This document shows, piece by piece, positions 3,551 to 38,881 of a DNA stretch of 64,000 bases (its first letter is position 1; each line of letters begins with the position of its first letter). The DNA is from Octopus bimaculoides. Its lineage: Eukaryota. Below the pieces are notes generated by a model that saw only the letters and a list, made by a program, of their open reading frames with translations, made no database searches and was not told the DNA's origin. Made by a program: the position numbers and the translations under genes. The stretch covers positions 33,864,127-33,928,126 of the forward strand of contig NC_068985.1 of the NCBI RefSeq assembly GCF_001194135.2. Direction: 5' to 3'.

Positions 3551-3598
3551 CGGATATGACGTTTCTGCATTTCCGGAATAGTTAACTTCTTACACGTG
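3551..3598 (+). promoter_or_regulatory. Duplicated DDX21 promoter module, copy A
   Basis: CGGATATGACGTTT (3551), ATTTCCGG (3569), CACGTG (3593); same spacing as copies B and C. Confidence 0.6.
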
Positions 3599-3779
3599 CT
3601 GTTCCGAACTTGGTGTCCGAAGAAAATTTGCTAAAATATAGCAATATATTTGTTAGCTGAGTGTTTTGTTTCTTTTAAAACATCAGCATACCAATTTGTC
3701 TTCTTTGAAATATATATAAATTCAGCTTATCAACGGAGAAAAACAAAACAAAAAAAAAATTGAGGATTATCGAGAAAGA

Positions 3780-3827
3780 ATGACTGCGAAGGTTAATGAA
3801 GATTCAAAAAAGAAAATAAAGAAAAAA
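3780..3827 (+). CDS. Candidate alternative DDX21 first coding exon, copy A: MTAKVNEDSKKKIKKK
   Basis: ATG plus 16 open codons, 40/48 nt identical to copy B, then GTTGGT in phase 0. Usage is unproven. Confidence 0.45.
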
Positions 3828-6217
3828 GTTGGTATCATTTTTATTTATATGAATATCATATTTTAACGTTCCTTTGTTATCGAAAAATGTAATTGAACAA
3901 CTTAAAACCGCTATTTTATTCAATGTACTAGTAATTCATTTGGATTTAAGTATGTATTACTCTAGTGTGCGCCTTCTATCAATTTTTCTGTACCCACGAG
4001 GTTTCTGCAAATCCTTTGAATTTAGAGACAAGACTGCACCGACTCAAGTTATCTTGAAGTGACGTTTGATTGCCTTCAATTTTTATTTAATAGTAAAAAT
4101 ATTTTTAGTACATATTTTTACGTGATTGATAATGGAAACCTTACATTTTCCTCCATGTAAAATTATAACTTTACATGAGGGCGTTATTTTCATGGCTTCT
4201 GCTCCAACAAAATTCTTGCAGATGAGTTGGAGACAGCGTCTGATATCTAGTGCTTAGTGCGATAGTTCTCTTTAACTCTTTATATGAAGATTAATGACTT
4301 CTGCTTTCATTTTCTAATCCTAAAGCTAGAGAATATGAAACAAATATCCCTTTGTACCCTCCCTCACCTTCTCGATTATTCACTTTGTAAGCAAAAAAAA
4401 AAGTAGACCTGTCTTCAAATTCTGATCGGCGGTCTTTTGGAATGGCAATTACTACCTCCTGGAGAAGGGAAAGTACATAGAATGGGGTGGTTCTTTCTTT
4501 CTGTGAAATAATTCATGTCCGAAAACTTCTTTTTTTCACACCAATTCCCAATTCCGTACCCTTTTCCGGTTACACAATACTGGTGTAATAGTAAAAAGTT
4601 AAAAATACCTATACTCAATATATATGGATACGAGGATTGAATGAAGATAATTTGTAGAAGCAGAAGAATCAAAAAAAGATATGTTAGAAATTGAGCATCA
4701 AAACCATTCAATGTCCTACGAATACATTTAAAAAAAATTTTAACGGTCTAAGGCCCACAAGGGAATACCTATTATTGACTCCTGCATTATCTAGGTAGCA
4801 CTCCTTTGTTCACTATTTTCTTAATAGTTTCTGTTTGTAGGAAAATACTTGTAGAAAACACCTCTAAAGTAAAGGCGAAGGTAATCGGAAGGAACATTTA
4901 TGGTGTCTAGTGAATACTGCGTTATATTTGTGATATTGGATTTGGATTGCTCGTACATTTCACTGCAAGGCGAGGCTCTCAACATGTTCTCTCCACCAAC
5001 CATGGTCTGGTGTGCAGGCCGTGAATTTGAGCTCGATATACTGGTTTGAAGAACCTTGTCACACTAGCTCGACATTGCTTGGCAGATATTATAGATGTCT
5101 TTGTGTGATATTTTAGATGCAATATAATTGGATTGGGTCAGTTGCTTTGGTCTTTAACCCATGAGCATTTAGATTACTTTGTCAAATATAATGCTTTATT
5201 TATTCACTTTGTTTTGAATTAATCATGCATCATCTCGTAGCTTCAAGATTTTGGTGATTGTTTATTTTTAGAACGACATTGTAGGGTAGGTGTATGGCCG
5301 GGTCTGGCCTGTTTGAAAATAAAACAGAATATTTGGTTCTGATATGGTTCGTTTAAATGTTAAAGGTTTGAATCTGAATTATTTTGTAGGCACAGGATTC
5401 ATTATTTGTTCACTGGTGTGGATTCACATATTAGTGATTCTGCTCACCTATGAGTTGTCTATGCAAGACTATCATTGCTGAAAATGTTTAGGTGCTTTTT
5501 AGTGTTACTGACGCCTTATTTTTTGTTTTTGTAGTGTATTTGTAAAGATGCTTTAGGGTAGCTTTTCCAATCTCTGAAACTATTCATTTGTTGGTAAGCT
5601 TTCGTTTTAGCTCAAGTCAAATCGAAACGTAGCCCATTAGTTAAGGTGGTGATTAAAAATCTTTAATCATTCTTTCTTTTTCTTTACTTTTGGATTCAGC
5701 TCGAAGCGCTGGATACGTAGATGATGGTGTTAAATCTACCAGTCAAGAACTCCTCCAACATGCTGACACATAGTCAGATAGATAGACAGACAGATAAATA
5801 GAGAGAGAGATAGGCAGACAGATAGATAACTCCGGCCAGTTAGTAGCCAAAGAAACAGATTTCAACTCAAACCAGCAGTAACGTTCCTTGTTTTTAGTTC
5901 TACTTTCACTTCTGACAGCTAATACCATGACAGTGCCGAATTTTCTTCTTTTCCACTTCTTTGAGGCAAATAAATTTTTCCGGAATCGGATCCTTCTCAA
6001 CAAAAAAACATGGGATTCCGTAAAAAAAAAAAAATCGGATCTTGTGAATTTTCCGAAAGTCCCCTTCCCAGAGTCGTCAGCGCGCATTTTTTTCCATATT
6101 CGTTTTCCACACACTTGTTAACCCCCGCACCAAGGCTGTTTTTTTTTTTTGTTCCCGGGTGAAGGTTTTTATATTGACCCAAATGTCTTCTACTTATAGC
6201 CTTGGGACAATCAAAAC

Positions 6218-6570
6218 CCTGTTACACGACGGCTTCTTTCAGTTTCCATCTACCAAATCCACTCACTAGGCTTTGGTTGGCCTGAGGTTATAGTAAAAGT
6301 CACTAGCCCAAGGTGCCACACAGTGGGACTGAACCCGGAGCCATGTGGTTGGGAAGCAAGCATCTTACAACAGTCATTCTTGGCCTTTGAGTCACAGGCA
6401 TAGCTGTGTGGTTAAGATATTTGCTCCCCAACTATGTGGTATTGGGTTCAGTCCTATTGTATGGTACCTTGGGCCAATGTCTTCTACAGCCTCAGGTTAA
6501 GGAAATCCTTGTTAATGGGTTTGGTAGATAGAAACTGAGAGAACCTCATTGTGCATGTGTGTATGATTGG
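6218..6570. mobile_element. Head-to-head pair of SINE family 1 5' halves (6218-6375 on -, 6395-6570 on +)
   Basis: Both carry the head and body motifs in opposite orientation, about 20 bp apart. Confidence 0.75.
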
Positions 6571-8652
6571 ATGTGCTCAACATGCAAAATTTAAACCAAT
6601 GTGAATGCAATTTCTGTTGTGGAATATCCAACTATCAGGTAGGAAAAGGCTTATCTCAATCTTGGCAAATCCAGTTGGAAAAGGCTTGTAATAAATCTGT
6701 CAACCTTTCAACTGTTTTACAGAGTTTGATGCTTATCGAGTTCCTTGTGTAGATGATTTGGTCAGAGGTGTATCCAAACTTAAATACTAATGATCTTTGT
6801 GGCCTCCTATCATCAAGTTGGTATACTACCTGAGAAAAGACAATATGCTCTTTCCAAACAGTTGGGTTCTTTTATCTGTTTACTTGTGTTAGGTATCTAT
6901 TCATGTTTAGCTTGTGGTGAAAAGAAGCATGATGTCTTTCCAATTTCTTAAAAGCTAACGATCATAGTAATCTGACTGTAAACATAAAAAATGTAGATAT
7001 GATCTAACTTCTATTAACTTCTTAAGGTATCTGATTTCATATGGAGAATCAAGTTATCATCATCGTTCCAGAATATTCAACTCTCAGGCTTTTGAAAAGC
7101 TATCTATACCTCAGAATCATCATCATCGTTTAACGTCCGCTTTCAGAATATTGAATTACAATGGTTGCTTGGGTTCTTCATGTGTTACATACACAACCCG
7201 AAATAGATCCTTTTCTGGTTTTGAAAATTGGGCCAGTGATGTAAATTTCATCCAATCTGAGAATGATGTAAAATGTATCAGTTCTAGTAAAGATTATATT
7301 AGATGGCAGCTGTTATTGCTTTTGGTAACTATTTGCCTTTTACTAGTGAAACATGCTACAACATTACCACCAGGTGATAGCTGTGTGGTGTTTTCATCCT
7401 GTACCACATTGTTGAAAAAAAAGAAGCTTATGTAGTTATAAAATCGTTTCCTTATGAAACAACTTAATGAAAACCGTAGAAAAATAAGGATAAAATCTTA
7501 CACGGGAGAATTGAACTTTTCCCTCATACATGATAAACTATAGACCTAATTTAGAGAATCTTTTAGCTGTACTTTTGCTACTACTTCATTATTTATAATT
7601 ACTACATATGGCTGGATGCCCTTTGTAGTGTACTCGAGTTTTGTTGTAACAGGACCACTGTTAGAAAGATTGCTTTGCCCTGTATAACTAAGGAGACAAA
7701 TTTGAGTGCAGGAGTGAAACAAAGAGACTGATATGATAGATGGAACATAGTGATGGGAGCAAGTGAGTAATGAAACATAGTGATTGCTATATGTCACCTG
7801 TTGGAAAGCAGACTGAGTAATGTCTGTTGAAAGTGAGAAAGAGCAATTTATGTCAACATGGTAATAGAAGAGAGAGAGCGAACATGTACTGTGAGTGAGA
7901 ATGATAGCAAAAAGCCGTGATGAGAGAGAGTAATTGCAATAGAGATAGGTGATGGTTGTTATTAAAGAGTGACATGGAGAAGAATGAGATAGCTAGTCAA
8001 AGAGAAGGGTGATGAGAGGGGGATAATGAATATGGACAAAACTGAAACCATCCCTCATTACATCAGGATGGAAAGGAGGTAATGTAAAAGGCAATGTTGA
8101 GGGGGTGAATGAAGACATGATACCATCCTTCATTATATAGTGTGCTACAGTGGATGGTGTCTCAACAGATGTAAATAATCATCTCAACTTATATTACCTT
8201 AACATCTATTTGCAAAACTTGCATAGGTTTTCTCAAGCACTGCTGTATTGACAATTGTTATGATCCTTCACTTCCTTTGCAAAGTTCAGCTTTTTGAGAT
8301 CAGTCTTCAAAATTTCATGTTGTTTTAGGTCTTTTCCACTTAGAACAACTACTACTTGATAAAACTGACATCTTCTATATGTGTCATATACTCATATTGA
8401 TGCAGTCTCTCTTGCACAGTACATCTGATTTCTCTTATATCCAGCTTTACTCTAAATCCATTTGTGCTCTGTTCCTTAAGCACACTACAATTACACATTG
8501 AGTAGAGCTTGATTATTTCTTTCTGCATTCAAAGTCCTCACCCCACTACCATACAGCATTGCACTTCATACACAAACATCATACAGTCTGCCATTTACCC
8601 TAAAACAGAATTTTTTTGTTATCAGATGTAATAACTCTGAACTTAATTACTT

Positions 8653-9631
8653 TTAACCCTTTCAATCCAGAATTTTTTCTCAAGATTTGCATGTATTTTC
8701 TCTAAAATTTGGGTAAAACTATATAGTGTAGATGCTTATTAGACAGTTTATAACGGTGCCAATTATGTAAACACTATTTTTAGTTTGGTACATATTTGTA
8801 CCATTTGGGTTTTCTAATCTACCAGGTATGTAACATTGTATTTAGATGAAGTACCAGGTATGTACCGGTTATATCAAAATATCGCAGTGAATCTTGCAAA
8901 AAAAAAATTGAATATTTCAAATATTAGAGAGTAAGATGAAGGTTGATTGAAAAACTGTATATTTCTACACTCTCTGAGTGGTTGGCGTTAGGAAGGGCAT
9001 CCAGCTGTAGAAACTCTGCCAAATTAGATTGGAGCCTGGTGTTGCCATCCGGTTTCACCAGTCCTCAGTCAAATCGTCCAACCCATGCTAGCATGGAAGG
9101 CGGACGTTAAATGATGATGATGATGATGTGTGTTTAATTCACAGGAAAAAAGTTTCTCTATTTTTATAAAACAACTGGTAAAATCTTAGCTATACAACAA
9201 ACTACAGTGGTACAAGTGTGTACCTATACAAAACCACAATAGTACAAGTGTGTTCTACTCAAAATTATTTACTTTTAGAAATATGTATTGCAACAATGTT
9301 GCAAGAATATTACTATCCAATGCTTATAAACTATGCACAATGTGTTTATGATAAGTTTACAGTGAAGAAAATGTTATAAATAGCTTACTAAAGCATGAGA
9401 ACCAATAATAAACACTTAAAAGCAGTTGGTAATGGTGAGGAGTTTGTATGCATGGGAGCCTTTTGAGCTGTCATTATAGTGTCATACACTCCAAACATGT
9501 CTGGTGCTACATACTTAACAGAAAAACTGGAGTGGAACTATGCTGCCTCACATAGAATGGGAATTTTAAAGATTTGGGTTGTAAAATTTTTGACTGGTAC
9601 AAATATGTACCAGCCGGGCTGAAAGTGTTAA
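8653..9631. mobile_element. piggyBac-like non-autonomous element with a nested RTE tail
   Basis: TTAA-CCCTTTCAATCC / GGGCTGAAAGTG-TTAA ends, and a perfect internal inverted repeat GGTACATATTTGTACCA / TGGTACAAATATGTACC. Confidence 0.65.
8965..9128 (+). mobile_element. RTE 3' tail (similar short tails at 53344-53515 on - and 63625-63810 on +)
   Basis: Near-identical to the 3' UTR of the 32.2-kb copy; ends in (GAT)n. Confidence 0.8.
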
Positions 9632-10747
9632 GGAGCCTTTTAAGCATTTCAAGAAATTTGTTCTAATCTTCTCTTATTGCTTACAGTGTGCCTTCTCTGC
9701 CAGCCTGTGATCTGACTATGCCTCTTCATTTATACAGAGTACACCATATGGAGTTCTATGTATTACTTTTCTACATATTGAGCATGACTATTTCCCTGAT
9801 AGTAGCAAGGTCCTTTCTTCTTTTGTACAGATTAAAATTTCAGTCTTTGCTAAGTTTACTTTGAGATCTTTCGAGTCTTGATGTTACTTCCATATCTGGA
9901 ATTTTTTTTAAATCTTCAGATTCAGCAAGGCCATCAGCATACCGAAATTCTCACAGCCATCCAGTTTTAAATTCGTCTCTTATGGCTTGAATCAGTGTTT
10001 GTCATAGGTGTGTGTGTGTAGAGTGATTGAAAAAGAAGCTATAGAGATTGCAAAAGAAGCAGGCAAATTGCTGCTTTTAATAAAATTAAGGACAAGTATC
10101 TGAAACGTTGGATTTTCACTCCTCACAACAATATCTGATCTTTATGGATTAACGCAGATCCGTTTCTTTGGATCCTAGATCTTACCCAATTAAGTCTATA
10201 GCTGATGTCCATACATCAGCTGTATAGTCTTGCTGTGAAATAAGGCACACGAACCCATTTTTGGCTGCATGGGCTGAGTGTTGAACGGATTGGTTTCATT
10301 GTTTGACAGCTCAAGATTTGCTCATTTCTCTGTCCCAAACAGACAGTGATGGTAATTGAAGGCTACTTAGGAAATTTTAAACATATGCTTAAGTGCAGTC
10401 TGACCACGTACTATTAATTGGCACGTAGATAGCCTGACAGTAATTACTTTAAGTGCGTTATGAATACATATACAGTTATAGGGTTATGGATAAAGTATAT
10501 GTATTTGTTTTCGTATGTATTCTGAGTGCGCAGTTAAACCAAAGAGGGGATTTTTTGGTAGCTTCGGATTACAAAACGAGTCAATTCGATCTTCGCTACA
10601 AAACCCTTATAAAAAGTTTTGTCGGCCTTATATCACAATGAAACTAAAATCGTATGGATGTGAGAAATAGAAGGGAAATTCTCCTTCGAAATCATCCTAA
10701 CATAACCAGAGAGAGATATAAGAAATGTTAAAAAAAAAAAGTTTCTT

Positions 10748-11100
10748 GGCTGTGTGGTAAGTAGCTTGCTTACCAACCACACAGTTCCGGGTTCAGTCCC
10801 AGGCATCTTGGGCAAGTGTCTTCTATAACCTCGGGCCGACCAAAGCCTTGTGAGTGGATTTGGTAGACGGAAACTGACAGAAGCCCGTCGTATATATATG
10901 TGTGTGTGTGTTTGTCCCCCTAGCATTGCTTGACAACCGATGCTGGTGTGTTTATGTCCCCGTCACTTAGCGGTTCGGCAAAAGAGGCCGATAGAAAAAG
11001 TACTAGGCTTACAAAGAATAAGTCCCGGGGTCGATTTGCTCGACTAATGGTGGTGCTCCAGCATGGCCGCAGTCAAATGACTGAAACAAGTAAAAGAGTA
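10748..11100 (+). mobile_element. tRNA-derived SINE, family 1 (near full length)
   Basis: A box TGGCTGTGTGG, B box GGTTCAGTCCC, body CTTGGGCAAGTGTCTTCT...GGATTTGGTAGACGGAAACTG, internal (TA/TG)n, tail CCAGCATGGCCGCAGTCAAATGACTGAAAC. Confidence 0.85.
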
Positions 11101-11814
11101 AATACTGTATGTAGGGTTATAAATAAATGCCCCCCCCCAAAAAAAAAAACCGGAGTGGATTTTTACTGTGAAAATTTCGTTCATACTCTCACTCTTTTCT
11201 GTAGTCATACATTCTCAATGTATAAAACAAGTTTATAGAACATAAAGACCACATGTTTGTTGGGAAAATATTGCGTTAACTGCCGGATTGTTCGAAAGAA
11301 TGAATCCTCAGTGGATTTGAATTTTAAAATGTAGTCGAGAGCTAACAAGAGGAACTTGTACGCAATATGCTGAATATAGAAGTTACAGCTCCTTCAACTC
11401 GCTGTTTGAGGAAAAGAAAAACAGTAGGTGGTCGCAGCGGAACACCTTCACTCATAGGGCTGATCTAAGTAGAACAAGTAACTATATGGAGAATCTTACA
11501 AACTTTCGAGAAGGTGAAATATTTCTTTTTTCGGAACAGTGGATTTCGAAGCACACAAATCTATAAATAATAGCATGCAAATATTGAGTTGAAAAAAGTT
11601 CTTCAATAAAAGAATAATAGCAGTGTTAATATATTGCTGACTTGAGGTATATTTTGCAATGTTTCCCCATAAATTAAGCTAAATTGCAATTGAAACCATT
11701 TCAATTATCATATGCTGAAAGTACAGTCTGTCACACACCCACTCCATTGTTCGCCTCTCTTCAGATCTGGGACCTTTGTGTCCGAGTCAGACCAATTTTG
11801 AGCAATAGTAAGAA

Positions 11815-11988
11815 AGTGCAGGTGTGATTGTATGATAAGGAGTTTGCTTCTTTGCCACACGGTTCTGGGTTCAGTCCCACTACGTGGCACCTTGGGCAAG
11901 TGTCTTCTACTATAGCCACGGACCGACCAAAGTCTTGTGAATAGATTTGGTAGACAGAAACTGTAAGAAGCCCATTGTGTGTGTGTAT

Positions 11989-12027
<39 letters not shown>

Positions 12028-12190
12028 TTTATGTTCGTGTTAATGTGTTTGTTTTGCTCAGTTACAAAACCAATTTTACAAGTACCAGGCCGAAAAAAAA
12101 AGGCCCAGAATCTATTCCTTCGACTATAATAAATTTTCAAGGCGGTACCCCAGCATGGCCGCACTCCAGCGATTGAAATAAATCTAAGAT
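11815..12190 (+). mobile_element. SINE family 1 copy, immediately upstream of promoter copy B
   Basis: Same head, body and tail motifs as the 10.7-kb copy. Confidence 0.8.
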
Positions 12191-12248
12191 AAAGTAAAGT
12201 AAATGGAAAAGAATTTCTAATTGTCACACGGAATGATAATGAGGTAAA

Positions 12249-12296
12249 CGGATATGACGTTTTCATATTTCCGGGTTAGCTAGAATTTTACACGTG
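12249..12296 (+). promoter_or_regulatory. Duplicated DDX21 promoter module, copy B
   Basis: CGGATATGACGTTT (12249), ATTTCCGG (12267), CACGTG (12291); same spacing as copy C. Confidence 0.6.
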
Positions 12297-12493
12297 CTCT
12301 CTCGAACCATGGTCAAGAAAACTTACCAAACTATATTTGTTATTTATAACAGATTTATATTTGTTAGCTGAGTGTTTTGTTTAACCTCGCCGTACTTGTT
12401 TGTCTTGTGTGTAAATATATATATATATATATATACATAAGTTCAAAGGAGAAAACAGTAAAATTGAAGATTGTCGAAAAGTTAGTACTTGGA

Positions 12494-12541
12494 ATGACTA
12501 CGAAAATTAATGGAGATTCAAGAAAAAAGATGAAGAAAAAA
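12494..12541 (+). CDS. Candidate alternative DDX21 first coding exon, copy B: MTTKINGDSRKKMKKK
   Basis: ATG plus 16 open codons similar to exon 1C, then GTTGGT at the position equivalent to the copy C donor. Usage is unproven. Confidence 0.45.
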
Positions 12542-13905
12542 GTTGGTATTATTTTTATTCACATAGATGTTGTATTTTGATTTTGTTGTAGAAGGATTTT
12601 CACTTGTATAAACAACTTTACTTAGCTTTATCTACTCTGCTCTCAGTTGTATATACTGAAACAATAAGCAAATGAGGTTTTCTGTTGAATTTTCAATCAA
12701 TTCTTTGAGTAGCGTGAGTGAGTTAATGTAAATTCAGTTATTTTTTTTGAAAATTGTCCACTATATATCTGTATATATATATATAAAACTTTTGTTTTCC
12801 GATCGGATTTTTAAATGTATACTTTTACGAAATAACACTTGTTATATTTTTAATAATCACTATAAATTTGCTTCTACACGTGAGATGTACCGCCATAAGA
12901 AGACTTCTGTCGTAATTATAAAGAATGGACTGCTTCACGTGAAGTACCTGAAAGGATAATTTCTTTATACTTAATCTCATGTAAAATTTTGTAATTATAT
13001 TTATGATAATTTGTCGACAACGACGAAATAGAACTTGAAATTTTGGGGGGTTTATCATTGTACTTGAGGCTTTTTTAGTAGATTGATCGGTGGATAAGTC
13101 AAACTTTAATAATTATAATATACCTACAAAAGTGTGCCCCCTCGCCCAACTTTGTTTCCTCATAACTTTTAGAAAAATGGAGGTTTTTATTTTAACGATC
13201 TATATTGGCATTTACTACGCTCACCAAAAATCGGTCGTTTTAACCAACATAGTTGTGTGAAGTACACGTGTTTGTGTGTGTGTGTGTGTATGCATAAAAG
13301 CTACCTCCGCTATAATACGGAAGGGATCACATAGAAACTACTAGTACAAAAATATAAAAGTGGATACTTTCTCCGAAACCTCTAAAAGCGTGCTGTTTAT
13401 CTCTGTAGAATATACCATAAACTGTAAATAACAACTCAGTTCATTTAATCCTAGTAGTCACTTGTATAAAATGATTTATTTGTAAATCCAGTCAATGTAG
13501 CTTGTTTCTATATTCACGCGCATATTCGACAACTAAACGCGCGCGGAGTTTCTGTAGTAGTCGTTGGAATCGAACCCGGAATCGCATAGTTGCGAAGTGG
13601 ACTTTTTAACCACAGCCATGTTTACCTCTCCACATAAATATTCTACAATAATACAAGCCTAGATTAGCCTTCCAAAATGCATTTTCAGAAAAGGATAATC
13701 AACCTAATAAATATAGAATCTAAATTTGATATATGCCAGTAATGTTGAGGAATCTAAGAGTAGATCTTTGTGCAAATGCGCTCCGCCCCTTCTGTCTTCA
13801 GTATTTCAGTGTCTGTGAAGCTACAATACCGAATTGATGCCGGTATTATTAGGCGGAGTCCTTGCATAATCGTGAGAATTTCTGAAAATTCTTATAAAGA
13901 AAAAT

Positions 13906-14570
13906 GGGGTCTAATGCAGTTTCGCACCTCTTCTTGAAAAATGCTTTTTTTTTTTTAAAGTTTTTTTTCTTCAGATTCCTACGTTTCAGATGTCGGAGAT
14001 TACGAATATACAAAAAAATACCCCACCACCGCCACCAATCCCATTTAAAATTTTGAACTTTTTTCGAAATTTTTCCCCCCTATGTTTTAGATATGCAAGA
14101 AACCACGTTTTGAAACTTTTAAATTCAATAAGCATATAGATATGTGTATAAAGAGATAGATATGAATGTCTTCCTGTGGCTAAAAACATTAGTAACACAG
14201 TCTTCTATAGGACCGCCACATTTAGTTGACAATTATTTTATAAATAAATGGACAGGGATGAATAGTTAGACAAATAAATAAATGGATGAAAAAATTCACA
14301 ATTTAAAATCGGGGTGGGGTGGAATTTGAGCCCCTTATTAAACTTAATGTTAAATATTAATGTTTGTTTCTCATAAAATGTTGTTTATTTAATTTACATT
14401 AAATTACTATTTACTGATATTTAAGGCAAACAAAAGTAAAACGCAAATTCTTTCCCTTTAAATGTTTTTGTCTGTATTTAATTTCGATTTGCATCTCTAA
14501 AACGTAGGAATCCGAAAAAAGTTTTTCAAAAAAATTCATTTTACAAGAAGTGCGAAACTGCATTAGCCCC
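13906..14570. mobile_element. Unclassified MITE with long multi-block terminal inverted repeats
   Basis: Exact inverted blocks CTAATGCAGTTTCGCAC (13911-13927 / 14550-14566) and GATTCCTACGTTT (13974-13986 / 14500-14512); GGGG/CCCC termini. Confidence 0.7.
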
Positions 14571-15274
14571 GAAAAATGTTATGATGTGCTTCGATCAGAA
14601 CTCTACCTGTTATTTTTACCTTGTCGCGTATAATTTGAAAACTATTTTGCTGCTATTTCTAAACCCGGTCAAGCAACCACGCCGATGTCGACTTGGTAGT
14701 AATATAGTTTCGTGTGTTGTCCATTCTAAAGTCAACCGTGATTGAGTGGTTCTATGACCAGTGGCTCTGAAGCCGTTCGTCTGTTTTTTTTTTCTTCTCC
14801 AAGTAGGCTTTCCTCAGAACTATGTTATCCAATACATCCATCCTTCTTCAGACGATAAGATGCGACTTAAAGGATATTTGGCTGGTATTTCTAGCAGGCT
14901 GTGAGAAAGGGGTGACGTTTCGAGCAGTTTTTCTTTGAAGGGATAGCTTAGCCCATCATTAAGCAGACATGTATGATTTAAGGTATTACAGTCGTGACCA
15001 CCTCGTTTTTTTTATTGGTACGTTTAGGACTACTATATCAATATGATGTGTCCTTTATGTGATGAGACTTGTATGGTTTGAGTAAGATTTGGATGCTGTG
15101 TCTAGAGTACGTTGAGTGACCACAGAAGAAAAAATAACTTGCTCATTGATTGCCAAAACGATGGTTTATAATATTAGATGCGAGCCACAAAGTGGAACGT
15201 GGTAAAATTAATTTAGATTAGTGGTTAAAATTATATAATAGCTAACGTGTCACATGGAAGAAAAGCAGGTTGAA

Positions 15275-15322
15275 CGGATGTGACGTTTTCATATTTCCTG
15301 AGGCGTCAGCTTCCCACACGTG
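15275..15322 (+). promoter_or_regulatory. DDX21 promoter module, copy C: CGGATGTGACGTTT (ETS/CRE-like) - ATTTCCTG (ETS-like) - CACGTG (E-box)
   Basis: Motifs seen at 15275, 15293 and 15317 in CpG-retaining sequence just upstream of exon 1. Factor assignments come from known consensus motifs only. Confidence 0.65.
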
Positions 15323-15470
15323 CTTATCTGATTTGGGTGCGCGAACCAAGTTCAGTGACGTGTTTAGTCGAGTTTATTTATTTGAAATTTTCGGCATTAC
15401 CAGCTATTTCTGAATATTATAAAATCGAATTCTCACAGGCCGGAGAAAATTAAAAAGCGTTAACTCAAGG

Positions 15471-15515
15471 ATGACTGCGAAATCTAGTGATGATTCGGAG
15501 AAACTCAAGAAAAAT
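15471..15515 (+). CDS. DDX21: DDX21-like exon 1 (proximal copy C): [15 protein letters not shown]
   Basis: ATG at 15471 lies about 150 nt downstream of the promoter motifs. Donor GTCAGT at 15516 is phase 0, matching exon 2. Confidence 0.7.
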
Positions 15516-17102
15516 GTCAGTTTTGTTTTAGTCTTTTAAATATTATATCAAGTGTTTCACTCACCCCATATTCAAATATAGATTCCACTTATATTTTGTA
15601 TGAAAAAGATACCAGGTTTCAATCACTAAAAAAAAAGTCTAAGAATGAAAATATAACGAAGATTTTTAACATATATGCAAATCTTTGTAGAGCTCTCTTA
15701 AGTTAATAATCCGGTTTAAAAATTCATTATTGTATTTATTATAATCATAAACGAATATTGAATTTAAAAATTCAATTTAGATGTTTCTATTATTCCAAGT
15801 CTATTTTGTCCTTGATTAAATGTATTTTGATGGAAGATATGGACACGTGCACAGAAACAAATTTATGGCATTCTTTTCCGATTTCCAGTTTAAGTGATTC
15901 CCCTATATTGAGATCGTAACCATTCGCTTTGTGCATATTTCGATTTTGCACTGTCGCAATTAGAATATATCCGGAATTGATAACCACTTGTTCATATGTA
16001 TACATCCACACAGGTATCACAGATATATTTGACACACTTATTACGTTAGCAATGTGAAAAATTTCCCCACTGCTTTATAGCGATCGAGTCACACTCGGGC
16101 GCACGCGTGAATTCTCAATGCGATTGGAAGACTAATTTTGTTTATATCCTTGTCCGGACACTTAGATATTAAAATTGAATATATTCGCGCCCATTTGTCA
16201 ATTGCGTTCATCTAATAATGGATTAATTTACATTTATTGCTTGATAATTAAATAATACCTTAACTGTATCATTGGATATATAAAGCATGGCAACTTTTAA
16301 AGTAAGTAATATTATACATCAACTTAAGATTATTTTTCAGATCTGTATAGAAAACTAAACGCGATTCCGTTCGTTGATTATGAACTTCCTAATATGACAT
16401 ATGCCTCCAGTTTATATATGTAATTACTGTTTCTTGATTGACTTATTAACTTAGGCTTGGACGTTTAGGTGAACTGTACTTTATTTCCAGCTTAGTGTTG
16501 TACGTATCTAGTAGCATTCGGTCAGTGACCACTTGATCACAAGTGTGCGGCGAAATTTTCGGGCACTTAGTATTAAGAAATATTCGAAATAAGTTTCTAT
16601 GTTCTTAAATTTGCTAAAATGACTGGCTCTTCCATAATATAATTATTTCGTTAACACACTGTGTCAGATGAACTCACTCGCCAAACGAGTACAATTACGA
16701 AATATTTCAGTTATATTTTAATACAGTAACGTTTAACAAAATATGATTTTGATCTAAAAAGCATTTGAGGTCTGAAAAACTAGTATGATTTTATTTCGTA
16801 ATTAACTTCACTTGGGGGTTTTCATCTCAAGCTCAGCATTTTTAATGCTTATTAAGATTGTTATTTTAAGCTCGTTACGAACGTGCCGTTATTGGTTGCA
16901 TTTTAGTATCTAACAGAATACTTGTAACTTAGGAAGTGCTGCTAACTGGGTCATGGCTGATGGTTTGTTTAGCTCTAGTTTGTCGTGCTAGTAAAAACGT
17001 GAAAGCTTTTCGTTAATCAATATGAACGTTGCTTTTACTCATGTTAACTTTATATCGATTGTATTATACTTTTTACTCTGTTGCATATTGTGTGTGATTG
17101 TA

Positions 17103-17152
<50 letters not shown>

Positions 17153-20100: not shown

Positions 20101-23100
20101 TTAGGTCAGCAGGCTCAGTCTTTGGGTCTCGCATTAATTGAATGAGATAAACCTCTCTCCCAGCAGATTTCAATCAAAGAAAGCACCCCCCCCTCCCCCT
20201 TTTTTTTTTTGAAGAGAATGGTGGTCGGGGATGGAAAAGAGTTATCTGTAACAATGTGAAATGCAAACAGATCATAGAGGAACGTTCAGAGCACGATTTC
20301 ACTTGAAGTTTGTATTTTCAATTTGGGATTGGGAAAATGTCTTGTACGAGCTTTTCATGGACATGATCATCAATTTGGATGTGTGCTGTGACCAGCTGAA
20401 CAAATTAAATGGAGTGATCCACCAGGAGCTTCCAGCACTTGCTTATTATAAGGCCACTGTCTTTCATCACCACAGATGTGGTGGTGGAAGTTACTGGGGC
20501 TTCGGTAGGTTTCGCCACACCCTAAAAATTGAATCTTGAGATTTTCACCTGTTTTAATCTCTTCAAAATTCATTGAATGACCAGATGAAGAGGATGTAAT
20601 AATTCACCCGGATGTGTTTTTTTTACTGTAAAGATGGAAAATAATGGATCTGCTCACAAGATGGCAGAAGATACTGTAATGAAACAGTAATTATATCATT
20701 GACTGAATAAATCACATTGTGTTTAAAACTGGTTTTATTTTCCCCTTAAAAAACTGAATGGACTTTTTGGCCAACTCAGTACTTAAATAGAAATATGATA
20801 AAAAGTTAGGAACATACAAGTATTTTTGACTAACAAAGTAGATCAGTCTTGGGGTTGCAGTTTTTTGTCATTTTAGGTAAGATTAGAATATGCTGAAAAT
20901 ACTTTTATATATCTTCAAGTAAATCAATTGGTCAGTTTCATCCTTTTCCAAGCCATATCAAGAGAATGTTGCAACATATTAAATACACAATCAGATTTAG
21001 CATTTTGTCTGAACACTTGTTTCTTCATTAGAAAATTTCAGTTTATCTTTCTTTCTTTTTTTTACTGACAGGAAAACAAAACCAATATGAATGGAAATGC
21101 TTCTAGTGCATCTGATAATGACAAAGTTGATCCCCAGGTGGAAATTGGTGCTTTTAGTAATTTCCGTATTTCTGACACCTCTATTCAAAAATTGAAAGGT
21201 ATTGTTTTTTGTTCTTTCTTCAGCTAAAACTTTTATTGTACTAATTTTCTGTGCTAATAAAGTCAATATGACGATTTCAATTCCCCTAAAACTTGAATGG
21301 ATCAGTAAGTTGAATTTATGTTAGTATAGTATATGGAATGTATTCTATATATAGATGGTATAGTATATAGAATGCATGGATTGTATTCTATATATATATA
21401 TATATATTCTATTATTAAGATTTTTTTTCTCTTTGTATGCAGGCATACACAATGTATTTAATTCCTGCTCCCCTTCCATTTATTTCATATACTTACAAGA
21501 TATACTCAGTCAGTCAGCTTTCAACAGTTGATCATTTCATAGTTTCTTGTCTTCAAGACATAGCTATACACAGTGCTATATAAATGTGAAATATAAGTAG
21601 TTGAAATTGTGTAATCAGAACTTAACCTGATTCAATAAGTATGCAATTTGGACCGAAGTTCTGTTGAATCAGTTATTGCAGAATATATGAGAGTGAAGAA
21701 GATAAACCCACTAGTATGGCATCTAATATACACTGGATTGTACATGTGAAGTAATATGAAGTGCTAACTAGTCAAAATCAACCATGATTCACATGAAATT
21801 GTCAGAAGGCAGATTCATCGATACAAAAGCTCATGCTTGCTGTCAGCTAGGATTATGTCTCTGTATTACATTGCTTTCCTGTTGCAACTCAGATATGTAT
21901 TACTACATCTTGCCATAAATTCATCCTTAAATTACATTCTTCACTTACGGCTACCATTTTCAGAATATTGTAAACGGCTCTACTTATTTCAAATCATTGG
22001 TGTGGGCTTATATTTCATTAATGACTGGCTATAAAGATTATTGTACTGTATAGTTTACCATATGAAGACTTGTGAGGTCTGTTATCCTTACAACTTTTCA
22101 CTTTAGTTGCTGTTATTTTAGTCAGTGTAATACTGAAGACCATCATTGATATGCATTATCTAAATAATTTAAATTAATCTTTCATATTTCAGCACTGTTT
22201 CATTATCTTATCGTCATTTAATTTTTTGCAGCCAATAGTATTGATTATCTTTTTCCAATTCAATCACAAACTTTTGATTATGTCTATGATGGCCACGATG
22301 TTATTGCTCAAGCACGTAAGTCCTGTTCATTTCAATTCTTTATGATGTTGGTTTCATAATGTAATCTGTTTTTGTCTATTGCTTAATCAAAGAAGTGCAG
22401 CACTTGTGACCTTTTTCAGGTCCTTTGAAACTTGTGGAAGTGAGCTATCCTCATATCAGAGACCTGGTTTTGAATTGTTGGAATAAAATATATTTCACTG
22501 AAGGCTGAAATGACCAATTGAAGGTGTTACACTACTTGATAAAGTCCCCCCCCCTCCCGAACAGGGATGGTCCTCCAGTGGGCTTCCACGCAGTTTTATC
22601 AACCAAATTCTACTAATAAGGCTAAGATTGAATCAAGGCTACTCTTAGCAGACACTTGTCCAAGATGCCATAGCACCATGTCTGCACTCATGCCTGTTGT
22701 AACAGCAATGTAATTTCACTAAGTAAACACTTATTACACACTACCTCACATTGTTATGGAAATGTTCTCTAGTCCTTCTATTTAAACCTTATTTTTACAG
22801 TGCTTTATCCCTTTTTGAAAAGAGTGCAAAATATAAACAAAGGAATAAGGAAGCCATAATGAATTTGAAAATGTTTGTGTAAAATCCAGCATTCTTCCTC
22901 TTTCCCATTAATATATTCTGTTTCTAGCTTACTGACCTACATGTGATTTTTTTTTTTTAAGCCACTTGTTTCATACTGTACAAAAGATAATTGTTTTATA
23001 TGCCAATAAAACTTGTCTATAGGTAAGGAAGGAAGATTATAAGGCCAAATAAATGTTTTTGCTACACACGGACATCTCAAGTAAATAGGCACCATTTTTG

Positions 23101-26100
23101 AAAGATTTATTTCTAGAAATCAAATGATGTCATGTGATGCGTTGAAATACCTAATCTAGTATTTAGTAGACATGCTTTGTTCAGTTTTTAATGATTTAAA
23201 CTGTTTGGGGATCTTACTCATGAGTAGTAGTGTCTGCTGCACACATGAAACTGTATAATGAGGGGTGTCTGAGGTGCCAGTGTATATGCTAGGCAACCTC
23301 ACAAAGTGTGTGTGTCAAATTATGTGGAGTTGTTTTATATGCCATCGAGTTCAATTGAAAATCCAGTTCCTGCACAGTTCTTTCATGTCCAATATTACAA
23401 TTCTGTCATTTGTTCCAATTGAATTTTGATTAAAATTTGTATGTTGATAAAACAAAAATGTTAATTCACGGTTATTTTAGTATTTACTAATATAATTGAA
23501 GAAAGTTTAAACAAAAAACACTAAATTATTTATTACATTCTTTGTCATCTGTTTCTTTGTAATTTATTTTAACATTTTTCTGTCTTCAGGAACCGGCACT
23601 GGAAAAACAGTAAGTTTGCTCATTTGATGATTTCTTTAGTAATTTTCATTCATTCATAACTATGAATAAAAATTGTTGGTATATTTTGACTTTTGCATCT
23701 ACACTTATAAAGTTTTATTTGTTGCTAACCATTTCAAGAAAACCACTTTTCATTCAAAAAAATTACTTGACTTATCTTCATCCACATTAAAGTTTAGATA
23801 GAAGTGAATGACTTAAAAATGATTTTGGTGTGTGTTACAGAATGACTGAAGGTGAAAATAATTGTTTATTAGTTATATGGTCTTTGGAGGTAAGCCAAAT
23901 CTATTGAGATTAATGGATCAACCATGTCTGAACCCAATAATCCTCCACTGAATCTTTCTCCATTATAGACATTCTTAGATACAACTTTATTAAAAAAGAG
24001 GAAGAACATATTGGATGATAAAGTACATTGCTTGAAAAGAAAGATGTCATATCATGACAGGAATTCTTTTCAGCACTAAGCTTGCTTTATCAGTGCTGAA
24101 CTGATACTAAACATTCTTGTTCATGGGAGAAATGTTCTTTGGAATTGGTATTACTACTATTTAAATGTCCTTTAACTTGGCTTTTTTGAATGACGTAAAA
24201 GTGGTGGTTTGTGGAAAGATTATGATATATTTATATTTTGAATGTAACTTCTCAACCATTGTTAATGGAATTTATATAGGTGCTATCTAGAAAGCAAATT
24301 TTAAGTGTTCCTCTTATATAATCAGCAACATTATATTAAAATTTTGTTTAAGGACAGTTAAACAAATTGTGCCTTAATTATCTCTTTATACATAGGTGTT
24401 AACTGCTTTGTTTTATTTCAGCTTTCTTTTGTTTTGCCACTGGTAGAAAAACTGATTAAAAAAAAGAAAACAAAAGAAGGTCGAATGCCTAGGGTAAGAA
24501 AATAATTATGCTTTATGACGTATCTCTGTAATAATTCTACATAATTTTTACGTTTTCAAAACCACCTAAGATTTCTGTTTGTATTTAAATCAAAATATTG
24601 ATGAGAATCATGTTATTACATTTGTGATGACAGAATTTCATTTGGTAAACAGGCTGTAAACTATTGCCAATTGTGTTGGAGATTTTAAGAATTTTTGATA
24701 GTTTCCCCCATCATCATCAAATGTCTACTGGCATGTGTTTTGCGGCTTGATGCCCTTCCTAACACAACCACTTCACAATGTACTGAATGCTTTTTAAGTG
24801 CTACCAACATGAGCGCTTTTGTGTGGTACCAGCATGGGTGTTTCTATGTGGCACCAGCATGTACTAGCCCTCAGGACAAGGGCCCCTTTTTGAGAGTAGG
24901 ACATATAGGACATGCCTGCATGTATGGACAGCCACAGTCTTACTTAGTTTGATGTATCTTCTCAAACAAACTGCCCGAAGTCTTGGTCTCTTGTTATCTC
25001 CTCTGTGAGGCCCAACGTCTGAAGATCCTCTCATTATTTCATTCCATGTCTTCCTGACACTGCCTCTTCCACAGGTTCCTTCCACAATTAGATATTGGTA
25101 CCTCCTTAAACAACTGTTCTCATCCATATGCTTTACATGAATCATACCACTGCAGTCTTCTCTCTTGCACACTACAACTGATGCCTCTTACCTAATTTTT
25201 ATCTTAAATTGTTTACACTCAGTTGTAAATGCATACTTACATTACCCATCCAGTGGAGTGTGCTAGTTTCATTTCTTTCAAGCCTTTGGATGCCCTCTGT
25301 AGTTATAGCCCATGTTTCACTGCCATGTATCATAGCTGTATGCACACAGGTATCATAGAATCTGCTTTTTACTCTTGGGGAGAGGCTCTTTGTTAAAATA
25401 ACCAGGTAGTGGAAATGATGATGATTAAAAATAAAATAAAATGAAGCATTTGAAAGTATTTCTCATACAATATTTTTGAAATTAACTACACCTAATTTTT
25501 AAGTCTTCAGAAATTACTCAAAATTTATTGACTATTTACATTAGTATATTTCCTTTCAAGTGTTCTCTATGACATTGAAGATCAATCAATGTGCACAGTT
25601 CTTTTTTTCTGTGCTTATTATAAAATAATTGCTATATTTGTTTATTATATATAGTCATATTTCAACAAAAATTGTATTCCATTGATCACTTCCATATTTT
25701 TTGATTAAAAAAAAAAAATTGTGTCTTACAAATTTCACAATTATTTTAGAATTTAATTGAAACACTAAATAGTGAAAGGTGTGTTGAATATTTATTTTCT
25801 TTGTATGATGTTTTGCCTAAATTATCTGAATTTAATTTTTTTAATTTTTTATTTCAATTTTCGTGTTTTCTAGGTATTAGTCTTACTCCCAACTCGTGAG
25901 TTAGCTAAACAGGTATATGAAGATTTTCTAAAAGTCTGTGGAGAGCTTTCTGCCTTTTGCTTTTATGGTGGAGTACCATATGAACCACAAGGTTAGTAAT
26001 GTTGGTTAATAATGTAAGGTGCATGCATACACATGTATTGTCATCTGTTTTTGCATTGGCTGTACTCTTTCTCCACCAGTTTTTTTTTCTATCGGTCTTC

Positions 26101-29100
26101 ACACAACAAAACCACTGAGTTACAAGATTTATTATTTACAAAAGACTAATGGCAATGTGAGGACAAGCTGAGAAAGGTACTTGGGTACACACCTCACCTG
26201 CAGGCTTCCCTATTCTTTCCATCTAGCAGTTACATTCGAAATATTAGTCACCTTGACCTACACTTCCATGCAATAGAAATCATGAAGCTGCAAAGTGAAT
26301 TTCAAAAGTCATTTATATATACATACAGATACATATGCATGTGTGGAGGTGCTTAGGTGGAATGTATGTGTTTAGGTGGCTCATATATGTGTTTAGGTGG
26401 CTCATCGTGCAAAATAAGGTTTAATGCGAAGAAAGGCAGCCAGGAGATCCATGGCTGTTACTTACAAGCTACTGTGGCTTAGTAGTGTGTATATGCTTTT
26501 GTTTATTGCTCTGTAGTTGTGAGCAAACATTGACACCCCCGCTCCCGTTGACCCAATAGAATATCAAGGAGGTGACACTTTGAAAGCAGACTGGCCTACA
26601 CAAGCACTCTGGTGATACTCAGTGTTGGCTGAATAGGCTGGAACATGAATGAAGTGGCCTTGCAAAAGCACAATGTGCCATCTGGTCCTGGAATTGAACC
26701 CATAGCCTTCACTAAGCTGTATGCCTTCAATAATATATACAATATTTTTGTGTGTACATTTATAGAATTTTATTGTGTTGTTACTGATTTGGTGTATGCA
26801 GTTACAAATTAATTTTGTTAGGACTGCTTTTATTTGTATCTTGTGAGCAATTTATAAAGCTCATTGATTATTAACGATAGTACTCTTAATTAAGCATTAA
26901 TTAGTAATACTTATTTCAGTAATATATCTAAATAATTGTATAAATATTTTCATGTGATCACCAATTCCTTACATTCTGAAGGTTGCTTGTGGTAAAAGAA
27001 TTTTTTTTGGCTGTGTAATTAACCAATTCATTACATAGATTAGCAGATATTTATATCTTTATATCAATGACTCTTGTTTTCTTCTATACTATCATTTCAT
27101 GTATTCAACAAGATTTTTATTTCTTTTAGAGCGTGCATTGTGGAAGGGCTTGGACATTTTAGTTGGCACACCAGGCCGTATTCTTGATCACATCCAGAAA
27201 GGCAATATGTCTTTGCAGAAAGCTAAACATGTAGTTTTGGATGAAGTTGACCAGATGTTGGACATGGGCTTTGCTGAATCTGTTGATGAAATTTTAAAGG
27301 TTGCTTATGACAAAGGTAATATCTGTGGAAATTTTGAAATTAACTATTTGATGATAAGAGTAAGTTTATTGTAACACTTGGTACACAAAATCTATTAGCT
27401 AAAAGTAAAAGCATAGTTATATGTAGTTCACATTTTTCTATACAAATAATACATATTTCCTTATTAAAATAACTTTCAGTGGACCCTCTCTCATTTTGTT
27501 GTATTTTGGTGATTCATGCCAATAAAACACACTGGGTCTATTTTGCTTCCTTTATTATTAAACTATTTTACCAATTAACGAATTAATTGAATCAATCATC
27601 AGTTCTTTCATTGCCATTCACATCTTTATCATATGCCCTTTCTACCTAGTTTACTAATTCTATATTTATATTTATGAGAAGGTGAGAGTATCTGACTGTG
27701 TGACATGATGTGGATTCTTTGTGTGAGAGTGTGTGCGTGCACACATTCCCACATATTTGTATGGTGTGGATTCTGTGGAAAGTGAGAGTGGCTAAATGTT
27801 TATTTATCTACTTTATGGTTAGTGTCTTTGTGATTAGACTTTGCATGTATGGACATTCACTTTTTGTATTCTTGGGATGGTATGTACCAAATTAGAATTA
27901 TATGACTGTTCATCTTACATTCTTATAATTCATAGGAATAAGGGATGGTAAATTCCTTATTCACATCATGTGGATTTTTTTAATAGATAAATTCTTTGAT
28001 ATATGACTTAGCTAATGTTACTATGATTGAACAGTGTACATTCAGCAATTTATTTTTTGTAAATCCACAGAGGATGAAGGACATAAGCCACAGACGTTAC
28101 TTTTTTCTGCAACTCTGCCGCCCTGGGTGTATAGAACTGCCCAAAAATACATGAAAAAAGATGTTAAGAAGGTTGACTTGATTGGCCAGCAACAAATAAA
28201 GACTTCTACAACTGTACAGGTATGTTATGAAGCTCTAAACTTTAGATTTTAATTGCTCTGCTATTAAAAGAAATATTTGTTCCGGTTCAGGATAGATTAA
28301 CTGTTAATATTACATCTAATTTACCATGATCTCGAGATTTACATAGGTGTTATAAAGTCTCACAGGTATCATAAATCTGTGACCTTTTGCCAAATTCGTG
28401 TTCAACATTAGTCTTGTAATCCTATGGTATTTCTTTTAGTAGCATTAATAAGCTTTCACTCAGCTGTTACTTGTGGCCAAAGAAAATTTTAGCACTTTCA
28501 AAACATAGTAAACAATCAGTTTTGTTTTGCTGTCTTAGACTTTTCAGTACTAAGAAGGCTCACTTTTAACCCTTTCGTTACCAAACCGCCCAAAGCCGCC
28601 CGAAAAAAATTTTGGTTCATGTGACCAAGCCGCCTGTAATCACCTATTCATATTTAAATGAGAATATCTGAGCAAATCTCGTTAGTACATTCGTGAAAAC
28701 ACGTGATTATTTGTGTAAACAGTTCAGCTATAGTTTTGTACGACGATCAACGTGTTTTTTTAATTTTGGGAGATTTTTTTCCAAATTTGTTCCTGTTGTG
28801 TTTTCAAAATTTGTNNNNNNNNNNNNNNNNNNNNNNNNNNNNNNNNNNNNNNNNNNNNNNNNNNNNNNNNNNNNNNNNNNNNNNNNNNNNNNNNNNNNNN
28901 NNNNNNNNNNNNNNNNNNNNNNNNNNNNNNNNNNNNNNNNNNNNNNNNNNNNNNNNNNNNNNNNNNNNNNNNNNNNNNNNNNNNNNNNNNNNNNNNNNNN
29001 NNNNNNNNNNNNNNNNNNNNNNNNNNNNNNNNNNNNNNNNNNNNNNNNNNNNNNNNNNNNNNNNNNNNNNNNNNNNNNNNNNNNNNNNNNNNNNNNNNNN

Positions 29101-37127: not shown

Positions 37128-37700
37128 AGGGTACCTGTGGAAGAGGTAGACCCAGGAAGACCTGGGATAAGGTGGTGAAGCACGACTTTCGAACATTAGG
37201 CCTCACCGAGGCAATGACTAGTGACTGAGACCGTTGGAAATATGTTGTGCATGAGAAGAACCGGCAAGAAAAGTGAGACCATAACCCGTGGCCTTTACCA
37301 TGGGTGTGGCCAGCCCACTTATGCATACCTTTACTTCTTTGGACACAAAACCCTGCTTGCGAAGACCTGTTGAGGCAAGTGAAATCACAATCGAAATTGA
37401 ACCNNNNNNNNNNGAAGACCTGTTGAGGCAAGTGAAATCACAATCGAAATTGAACCAAATTCGACGACTGGCACCCATGCCAACCTTCCTTCATTAGACA
37501 CTAAACTCACCTTGCGAAGACCTGTTGGGGCAAGTGTAAAAAGCACCCACTACACTCTGAGTGGTTGGTGTTAGGAAGGGCATCCAGCTGTAGAAACTAT
37601 GCCAGATCAGATTGGAGCTTGGTGCAACCATCTGGTTCGCCAGTCCTCAGTCAAATCGCCCAACCCATGCTAGCATGGAAAGCAGACGTTAAATGATGAT
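37128..37700 (+). mobile_element. RTE LINE 3' fragment
   Basis: GRGRPRKTWDKVV-type coding end plus the conserved 3' UTR (TAGGAAGGGCATCCAGCTGTAGAAAC...GACGTTAAATGATGAT). Confidence 0.8.
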
Positions 37701-38881
37701 CATCTCAGTTGTAGGAACATTATATATGAAGCTTACGAGTATATTAGATGAACATTACAGAAAAAAAAAATGTGGCTTAGGATAAATATCTTTGTTAAAT
37801 CTCTTATGTAACTTAGGTCCTAACTAGTGTTCAGAAAGTTGAATCCCTATATGTGATTCCTCCTACAAAAATTATGCCAATNNNNNNNNNNNNNNNNNNN
37901 NNNNNNNNNNNNNNNNNNNNNNNNNNNNNNNNNNNNNNNNNCCCCTCCAAATATAATGTCAATTTCTAAAGTTATTTTTCCTGATTCCCCAAATATTTAC
38001 AAAATGACCACAGGTTAACATGTATCCTGATGCAACATTTTGAAATTTGTTTTCTGTGATTTTTTTTATTAATCATTAAGCATAAATATGATTTTATTAC
38101 ATTGGGATAGTTAATGAGGTTAAATTTAACTTCTGTTGTCCCAGTGAAAATATTTCAGTTGTTAAAAAGCTTTTTCGAGTATTGTATTAAAAATAGATAT
38201 TGAGGCATGGCATGTCTTTCTTTGGAATAGGTGCTTTGCAGTAGATCTTGTGAAATCATTTCATATAACCTTCAGTATTATGTAACTTCTCAGATGTTGA
38301 AAAAAGATACTGAGGCAAGACATGATTTTCTTTGGAACAGGTGCTATGCAGATCTTGTGAAGTCATTTCATATACACTGCTTGATGCTAAGGCCTTAAAA
38401 ACTCTTGGTGCTCAAATACTACAGCCGAATTAAGATGCATCAATGTATTACAGAGCTAGATGTTAATGAACTCAGTAACACACTTGCTTTAAATAGGAAA
38501 GAAAAAATTTAATATTGGCTCTTTTGTCACATGGTAGACTTATAGCAAGGTGAGTTGATCACCATATATGAATGTAATTTCAAAGCATTTAATTCTTGGT
38601 TTCCTAGTGATGAAGTAATTAGTTTTATGGTTCACTATAATTTTAAATCTTCATTTAAGATAATTTTCATCCATATAAATTGCATATTAAATACTAATGA
38701 AACAATGCACTATATAAGAATATTTCTTGGTATCAATTTCCAGGTAATAGTCATTAATCTCAAATCACGTTTTTCATTCCCCCTCTGAAGCCATCTTTGC
38801 CAGGACCAGAATTGGAGTTTCTCTCAAGAAATAGGCTTTTTTTTTGCCCCAGGCCAGGAAAGAGATGTTCTCTGCAATAGT

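Follow-up and report, generated by a model that had tools for sequence, protein, structure and literature searches.

Tandem alternative first exons of the octopus DDX21 helicase gene, with promoter and splice-donor modules as the probable main target of selection

Why should one gene of ribosome biogenesis be preceded by three related copies of its own 5' end, and which part of these copies is maintained? This question is raised by a stretch of 64,000 nucleotides from Octopus bimaculoides (NC_068985.1, positions 33,864,127 to 33,928,126; the whole stretch is here called the window, and its sequence is identical to CM046605.1). The window contains the octopus orthologue of DDX21, annotated as 'nucleolar RNA helicase 2', a DEAD-box helicase of the DDX21/DDX50 type whose RefSeq protein is matched at 100% by nearly all of the window exons (tblastn, isoform X1). 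An original prediction, made from the sequence letters, had proposed three promoters and three alternative basic N-termini for this single helicase. As detailed below, we consider it likely that the copies are alternative ('variable') first exons which one gene carries in tandem, and that selection acts mainly on their promoter and donor modules.

Layout of the cassettes and their use in annotated isoforms

Three homologous cassettes, termed A, B and C, are found where they had been predicted, on the + strand at 3.55, 12.25 and 15.27 kb, all in the same orientation and 5' of the shared exons. Hereby, each cassette consists of a motif block followed by an ATG, 15–16 stop-free codons and a phase-0 GT donor, the sequence of the three donors likewise agreeing with the prediction. 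The spacing between motif block and ATG is about 150–200 nt, and the ATG context is good in A, B and C. The block is made up of GGAT(A/G)TGACGTTT, TTTCC(G/T)G and CACGTGCT, with equal spacing in all three copies, and the pattern TGACGTTT-N5-TTTCC-N18-CACGTGCT is matched three times in 64 kb (at 3557, 12255 and 15281; all +), compared to 0.00 matches expected from 100 shuffles. The features are listed here together with their likeness to two further loci, that of Argonauta hians (L001) and that of a related octopus, referred to as the second octopus (Logan contig L003, run SRR11869394).

3552..3600, + strand: motif block of cassette A, with GGATATGACGTTT (cAMP response element (CRE)-like), TTTCCGG (ETS-like) and CACGTGCT (E-box); probable Argonauta orthologue at L001 9830-9858
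3645..3671, + strand: A copy of the 27-mer, between motif block and ATG, probable 5' untranslated region (UTR) or start-site region
3780..3827, + strand: coding part of exon 1A, MTAKVNEDSKKKIKKK; donor GTTGGT at 3828; N-terminus of X1; 84% over 87 bp to Argonauta cassette 1
12250..12298, + strand: motif block of cassette B, with GGATATGACGTTT, TTTCCGG and CACGTGCT; 95% to the second octopus over 12222-12300
12356..12382, + strand: B copy of the 27-mer; one mismatch in the second-octopus B orthologue
12494..12541, + strand: coding part of exon 1B, MTTKINGDSRKKMKKK; donor GTTGGT at 12542; N-terminus of X2; same peptide in the second octopus
15276..15324, + strand: motif block of cassette C, with GGATGTGACGTTT, TTTCCTG and CACGTGCT, and the copy-specific AGGCGTCA between the last two; core 15271-15330 identical (100%) in the second octopus
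15471..15515, + strand: coding part of exon 1C, 15 residues; donor GTCAGT at 15516; N-terminus of X3; 71% in the second octopus
16287..16301, + strand: fourth first coding exon, MATFK; consensus donor GTAAGT; N-terminus of X4; not homologous to the cassettes; 16280-16339 identical (100%) in the second octopus
21072..21198, + strand: common exon 2, ending in QKLK, with AG before 21072; single copy; in-frame Met used by X5; conserved in the second octopus and in Argonauta
22231..35881, + strand: remaining exons (DEAD core, helicase C, GUCT, Gly/Arg-rich tail), each single copy

A and B are 68% identical over approximately 330–348 bp (E=1e-29) and, as the prediction had noted, share the 27-mer TATATTTGTTAGCTGAGTGTTTTGTTT exactly. 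Significant alignment of C is confined to the motif block, which is 85% identical to that of B over 52 bp (E=7e-8), the C exon still being recognisably related. Since homology ends about 40 bp inside the intron on the 3' side and just 5' of the motif block, the duplicated unit measures approximately 300–330 bp. The notion that the 5' end alone was duplicated is borne out by this limit and by the single copies of the later exons: a tblastn search with the full protein finds each exon from exon 2 onward once and no second copy of any of them, including behind A or B. A fourth cassette was not found in the 9.7 kb 5' of A.

Two further possibilities were rejected. An assembly artefact is at odds with the roughly 32% divergence of A and B, the joint presence of B and C on the independent Logan contig and the presence of all three cassettes in Argonauta. 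As to a hidden gene between the cassettes, nine open reading frames (ORFs) of 83–123 aa at 1.8–20.5 kb gave no Pfam match; the annotated gene list of the locus likewise shows no other gene between them.

The 90% cluster of the octopus protein comprises five RefSeq isoforms:

X1, XP_014770272.1: MTAKVNEDSKKKIKKK-ENKTN..., from cassette A
X2, XP_014770273.1: MTTKINGDSRKKMKKK-ENKTN..., from cassette B
X3, XP_014770274.1: cassette C peptide joined to exon 2, from cassette C
X4, XP_014770275.1: MATFK-ENKTN..., from the fourth first exon
X5, XP_014770276.1: N-terminus at the Met inside exon 2, no first-exon peptide

In X1, X2 and X3, which are annotation models, one cassette peptide each is fused to ENKTNMNGN... 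of exon 2, in agreement with the predicted in-frame splicing of A, B and C to position 21072. With window positions 3780-35881, the NCBI gene range begins at the start codon of A and ends with the stop. The NCBI pipeline normally makes extra isoforms only where transcript alignments support the introns. The idea of a three-start system is supported for A, B and C by these models and falls short in number, as more starts are annotated, namely the X4 exon and X5 in exon 2. The first-exon products of A to C are already part of the public annotation as X1–X3; what this analysis adds is that the promoters are paralogous, that their motif grammar is fixed and how old the triplication is. A search of the literature on octopus DDX21 first exons returned nothing relevant.

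Conservation from octopuses to cuttlefish

In Argonauta hians, three cassettes are present in the same order 5' of its exon 2:

L001 9830-9858: motif block of Arg-1; peptide MTAKSNGDSKKKMKKK, donor GTTAGT at 10001
L001 12626-12675: motif block of Arg-2; ATG changed to ATT and frame broken, only MKKK in frame, donor GTTGGT
L001 13604-13650: motif block of Arg-3; C-specific AGGCGTCA between ETS position and E-box; MTAGKKSKH, donor GTTGGT

Between Octopus and Argonauta, the cassettes are the sole unique sequence that aligns 5' of exon 2, all other matches being short interspersed nuclear elements (SINEs). Individual copies can be paired by signature characters: A with Arg-1 by GAGGATTAT before the ATG, and C with Arg-3 by AGGCGTCA. 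Two kinds of character link B and Arg-2: codons 3 and 5 read ACG and ATT in both, and just 5' of the start codon both have an additional segment with (C)ACTTGG at its end, which the second-octopus B also has and which A and Arg-1 lack.

In the second octopus, B, C and exon 2 lie on one genomic contig, which starts about 240 bp 5' of the B motif block, so that the A region is outside of it. Against an aligned background identity of approximately 86%, the motif block of B is 95% and its coding part 98% identical, with an unchanged peptide. For C, the complete identity of the motif-block core is accompanied by a coding part of only 71% identity, compared to 91–95% for its flanks; hereby the in-frame ATG is missing, while the donor GTCAGT is intact.

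These comparisons bear on two alternatives concerning the history of the copies. According to the first, a partial 5' duplication left A and B behind as remnants that lack function and are in decay, and C, or the region from C to X4, is the sole working promoter. The low A/B identity of just 68%, the broken ORF in one copy in each of the two other species and the location of the strongest CpG enrichment (the top unique-sequence CpG density of the window is found at 15.3-16.5 kb, around C and X4) would fit such a scenario. It is nevertheless very unlikely, as three cassettes survive in Argonauta amid an unalignable upstream region and first intron, as motif block and exon of B exceed the background in the second octopus by the margin given above, as the motif spacing is identical across the three copies, and as the RefSeq models X1 and X2 make use of A and B. 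The second alternative attributes the similarity of the copies to gene conversion (concerted evolution) or to independent duplications in each lineage instead of long-term purifying selection. We regard it as highly improbable: orthologues are much closer than paralogues (91% for B and its second-octopus orthologue, 71% for B and A in the pairwise identity matrix), and copy-specific insertions and substitutions are shared between species in the same positional order, even though the cassettes are short and near each other, the exact 27-mer sits inside an otherwise 68%-identical A/B alignment, and identities to the Argonauta copies by themselves leave orthology unsettled.

The preference of the original prediction for function over decay is strengthened by the same-order cassettes in Argonauta and by the B and C motif blocks of the second octopus, whose identity exceeds the background. 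The triplication thus appears to be old, conserved and not decaying, and probably took place within the octopods at a time that precedes the split of Octopus and Argonauta. Molecular estimates of this split are older than the bound set by fossils. The fossil lower bound is about 29 million years (Ma) (PMC12682272).

Which part of the cassettes is maintained becomes apparent when all nine cassettes are compared. The TGACG core is present in 9/9, the ETS site and the E-box in 8/9 each, and splice donors are kept in every one. In contrast, the mini-ORFs are not kept: Argonauta has lost the ATG of B and the second octopus that of C, whose peptide has diverged and is non-basic. Because octopod exon 2 carries a conserved in-frame ATG, a cassette without its own ATG would still give an X5-like protein. 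As motif blocks and donors are kept while mini-ORFs are lost, the promoters and first exons seem to be the conserved feature and selection seems to act mainly there. Only the ancestral basic tail MTAKxNxxSKKKxKKK of A and B looks constrained, and 'three distinct N-termini' cannot be counted among the conserved properties of the system. Of the predicted three promoters and three N-termini, the first part, at the level of putative promoters with conserved motif blocks and donors, is the stronger one, whereas the second is weakened by the start-codon losses of B and C; the predicted basic tails are found on A and B, not on C.

It could be argued that protein diversity is the selected property, i.e. 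that the helicase functions differently with each of its three tails and that the promoters hitchhike. ORFs, frames and donors of A, B and C are indeed intact in O. bimaculoides, the basic-tail pattern is kept from cuttlefish to octopus despite synonymous changes, and the non-basic C tail could represent a new function. We nonetheless judge this explanation unlikely. The loss of the B ATG and frame in Argonauta and of the in-frame C ATG in the second octopus, in both cases with intact motif blocks and donors, argues against an essential distinct protein product. Moreover, the C coding part is less conserved than its flanks, the A and B tails are near-equivalent, and RefSeq isoforms X4 and X5 show tail-less protein also to be made.

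In the cuttlefish Sepia pharaonis (L002) one cassette is present, composed of GGTGACGCTTT, ACTTCCGG and CACGTG followed by MTAKLNGESKKKSKKK and the donor GTTCGT; no duplication of it was found within the 47 kb examined. Synonymous differences between the Sepia and octopus tails leave the peptide pattern unchanged, which indicates constraint on the basic tail. In RNA-derived cuttlefish contigs (L004-L008), exon 2 (at L002 14185) follows directly on at least three alternative first exons, namely MTAK... (the cassette), MEIS.../MDGIDS... (L002 12330-12637) and MAGPHYTQEK, which maps outside the 47-kb locus. For the latter two, no homology to the cassette or to any octopus sequence was found. The Sepia locus hence resembles that of octopus in the CRE-like/ETS-like/E-box trio, the mini-exon and the joining of alternative first exons to exon 2, and differs from it in that the cassette is single and the other first exons are non-homologous to it. 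Since cuttlefish show both one cassette and several first exons in use, these two traits predate the octopus–cuttlefish split.

Several observations weigh against the proposed function and age of the array. Arg-1 has lost the E-box, and Arg-3 the ETS site. The pairwise identity matrix is indecisive for one-to-one orthology with the Argonauta copies, the sequences being short and diverged, and this orthology rests on cassette order plus a few signature characters. The CpG observed/expected ratio of 1.3–1.4 at the cassettes, compared to a window median of 0.31, is weak evidence because SINE copies in the window are CpG-rich as well. A 156-aa N-terminal query of the protein collection yielded no spliced 5' fragments from octopus and matched just one octopus entry, P0082, a genomic ORF that covers exon 2, and all members of the full-length protein's cluster are NCBI models; we infer the promoter activity of each octopus copy from RefSeq models and conservation. 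Finally, the first letter of L008, a transcript contig from cuttlefish, lies 16 nt 5' of the motif trio. The trio may thus be located at or just 3' of the start site and hence be transcribed, although the start of this contig could also stem from reads of pre-mRNA made at an upstream promoter.

Proposed mode of use and relation to known systems

Under the interpretation as variable first exons arrayed in tandem, the ancestral unit of about 300 bp would have contained three motifs at a set distance from one another (CRE-like TGACG, ETS-like TTCCGG and the E-box CACGTG); after them would have come a short 5' UTR, a Lys-rich mini-exon of 16 codons with its ATG, and a donor. In the octopod lineage this unit would have been copied twice in tandem before the divergence of Octopus and Argonauta, and transposable-element insertions would later have pushed the copies kilobases apart. 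Each cassette would act as a self-contained start module that initiates its own transcripts from a start site of predicted position. A transcript from A would be spliced from 3827 to 21072, whereby B, C and the X4 exon leave with the intron. Because a first exon has a donor and no acceptor, whichever copy fires would join the single exon 2, and the copies downstream of it would be removed with the intron. The same splicing logic, with first exons lacking acceptors, underlies the variable exons of UGT1 and the protocadherins (PMC1885805, PMC3325998).

At the protein level, A and B would add the basic tail MT(A/T)KxNxDS(K/R)KKxKKK, which resembles a nuclear/nucleolar targeting signal, and C a non-basic tail, whereas a copy without ATG would be translated from the exon 2 Met to give a tail-less protein. 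Selection would mainly favor extra or differently regulated starts of a ribosome-biogenesis gene, the effect on the protein being secondary. A combination of CRE-like, ETS-like and E-box elements is typical of TATA-less growth-regulated and ribosome-biogenesis promoters. As a tentative and rather doubtful extension, the modules might have been kept since before the Octopus–Argonauta split (at least 29 Ma) through differing use by tissue, stage or growth state. Such use might set the amount of DDX21 and the ratio of tailed (A, B) to tail-less protein (C in some species, X4, X5), and thereby tune nuclear/nucleolar targeting. If true, octopods would have gained a regulatory innovation of their own on a gene at the core of ribosome biogenesis.

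The layout corresponds to that of known variable-first-exon clusters such as UGT1A, the clustered protocadherins and GCNT2, where tandem paralogous first exons are spliced to common exons with one variable exon per transcript. In these clusters, the first exons have their own conserved promoter motifs and a 5' donor only (PMC1885805, PMC3325998, PMC3333863). The octopus array differs from them in that the variable exon encodes 15–16 residues and not a whole domain, and in that there are three copies and not a dozen or more. Furthermore, the helicase concerned has a housekeeping role in ribosome biogenesis, the promoter motifs are nearly alike across the copies, so that regulatory diversification is not evident, and the coding capacity of single octopod copies is dispensable in some species.

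Compared to DDX21/DDX50 (Gu) of other animals, the octopus protein shows the same domain set and Gly/Arg-rich C-terminus, with 50–60% identity to mollusc and vertebrate DDX21. A Lys-rich N-terminus is a trait of the DDX21/DDX50 family and is common to octopus. The N-terminal region before the helicase core comprises about 35 residues in cephalopods, compared to about 55–65 before the GAxSxF motif in the non-cephalopod relatives read (P0001, P0104), and, unlike in DDX21/DDX50 of other animals, the first 16 residues in octopods derive from one of several alternative first exons.

The locus represents no new kind of biology, given that the variable-first-exon layout is known and the isoforms are already in RefSeq. 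It rather illustrates that a promoter and first-exon module of 300 bp can duplicate alone and persist while its surroundings decay, and it draws a line between the conserved parts (motif grammar, donor) and those that are not kept (the mini-ORFs of single copies). The promoter grammar TGACG-N10-TTCC-N18-CACGTG, which extends from cuttlefish to octopus, could serve in cephalopod expression constructs.

Gene body, intron islands, repeats and neighbours

Precomputed Pfam domains of the helicase protein (P0093) are PF00270 and PF00271 (DEAD, helicase C), PF26142 (DDX21-DDX50 dimerisation) and PF08152 (GUCT), followed by a glycine/arginine-rich C-terminal tail; the helicase motifs TGTGKT, PTRELA and DEVD can be read in the window exons. 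Besides the region around the X4 exon, positions 16083-16142 are also 100% identical in the second octopus. Within the first intron, 17510-17569 and 17743-17802 are 98–100% identical to the second octopus, compared to the background of about 86%, and contain no obvious ORF; these islands could represent a non-coding first exon of X5 or an enhancer.

Two stretches of O. bimaculoides, 13413-14883 and 18204-18828, of which the second holds a SINE copy, have no counterpart in the collinear second-octopus contig; for this reason the distance between B and C is 3.0 kb in O. bimaculoides and about 1.45 kb in the second octopus. The SINE-like family is present in many copies (6223-6541, 10744-11109, 11816-12201, 18218-18802, 41602-41865, 50157-50541 and 58880-59173) and occurs in Argonauta as well; one copy ends within about 50 bp of the 5' edge of cassette B.

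The next annotated gene 3' of DDX21, from about 44583 (L009 50804-52102), encodes a THAP-domain protein (precomputed Pfam), unlike in cuttlefish, where an IRF-domain gene follows (L002 40853-47258, - strand). A Pfam scan of the 167-aa ORF at 48779-49282 gave no match. Assembly gaps (runs of N) are located at 28815-29680, 30682-30736, 32512-32998, 37404-37413, 37882-37941 and 42284-42482, three of them inside DDX21 introns. Several gaps abut a repeated ORF fragment, MLHGSETW...LRWMCNV, found at 25199-25345 (- strand), from 32419 onward (+ strand) and at 42182-42712 (- strand), which has no Pfam match and looks like a retroelement remnant. Further downstream, remnants of a mariner/Mos1-type transposase are present at 54691-55510 on the - strand (PF01359, E=1e-5; HTH_48, E=7e-4).

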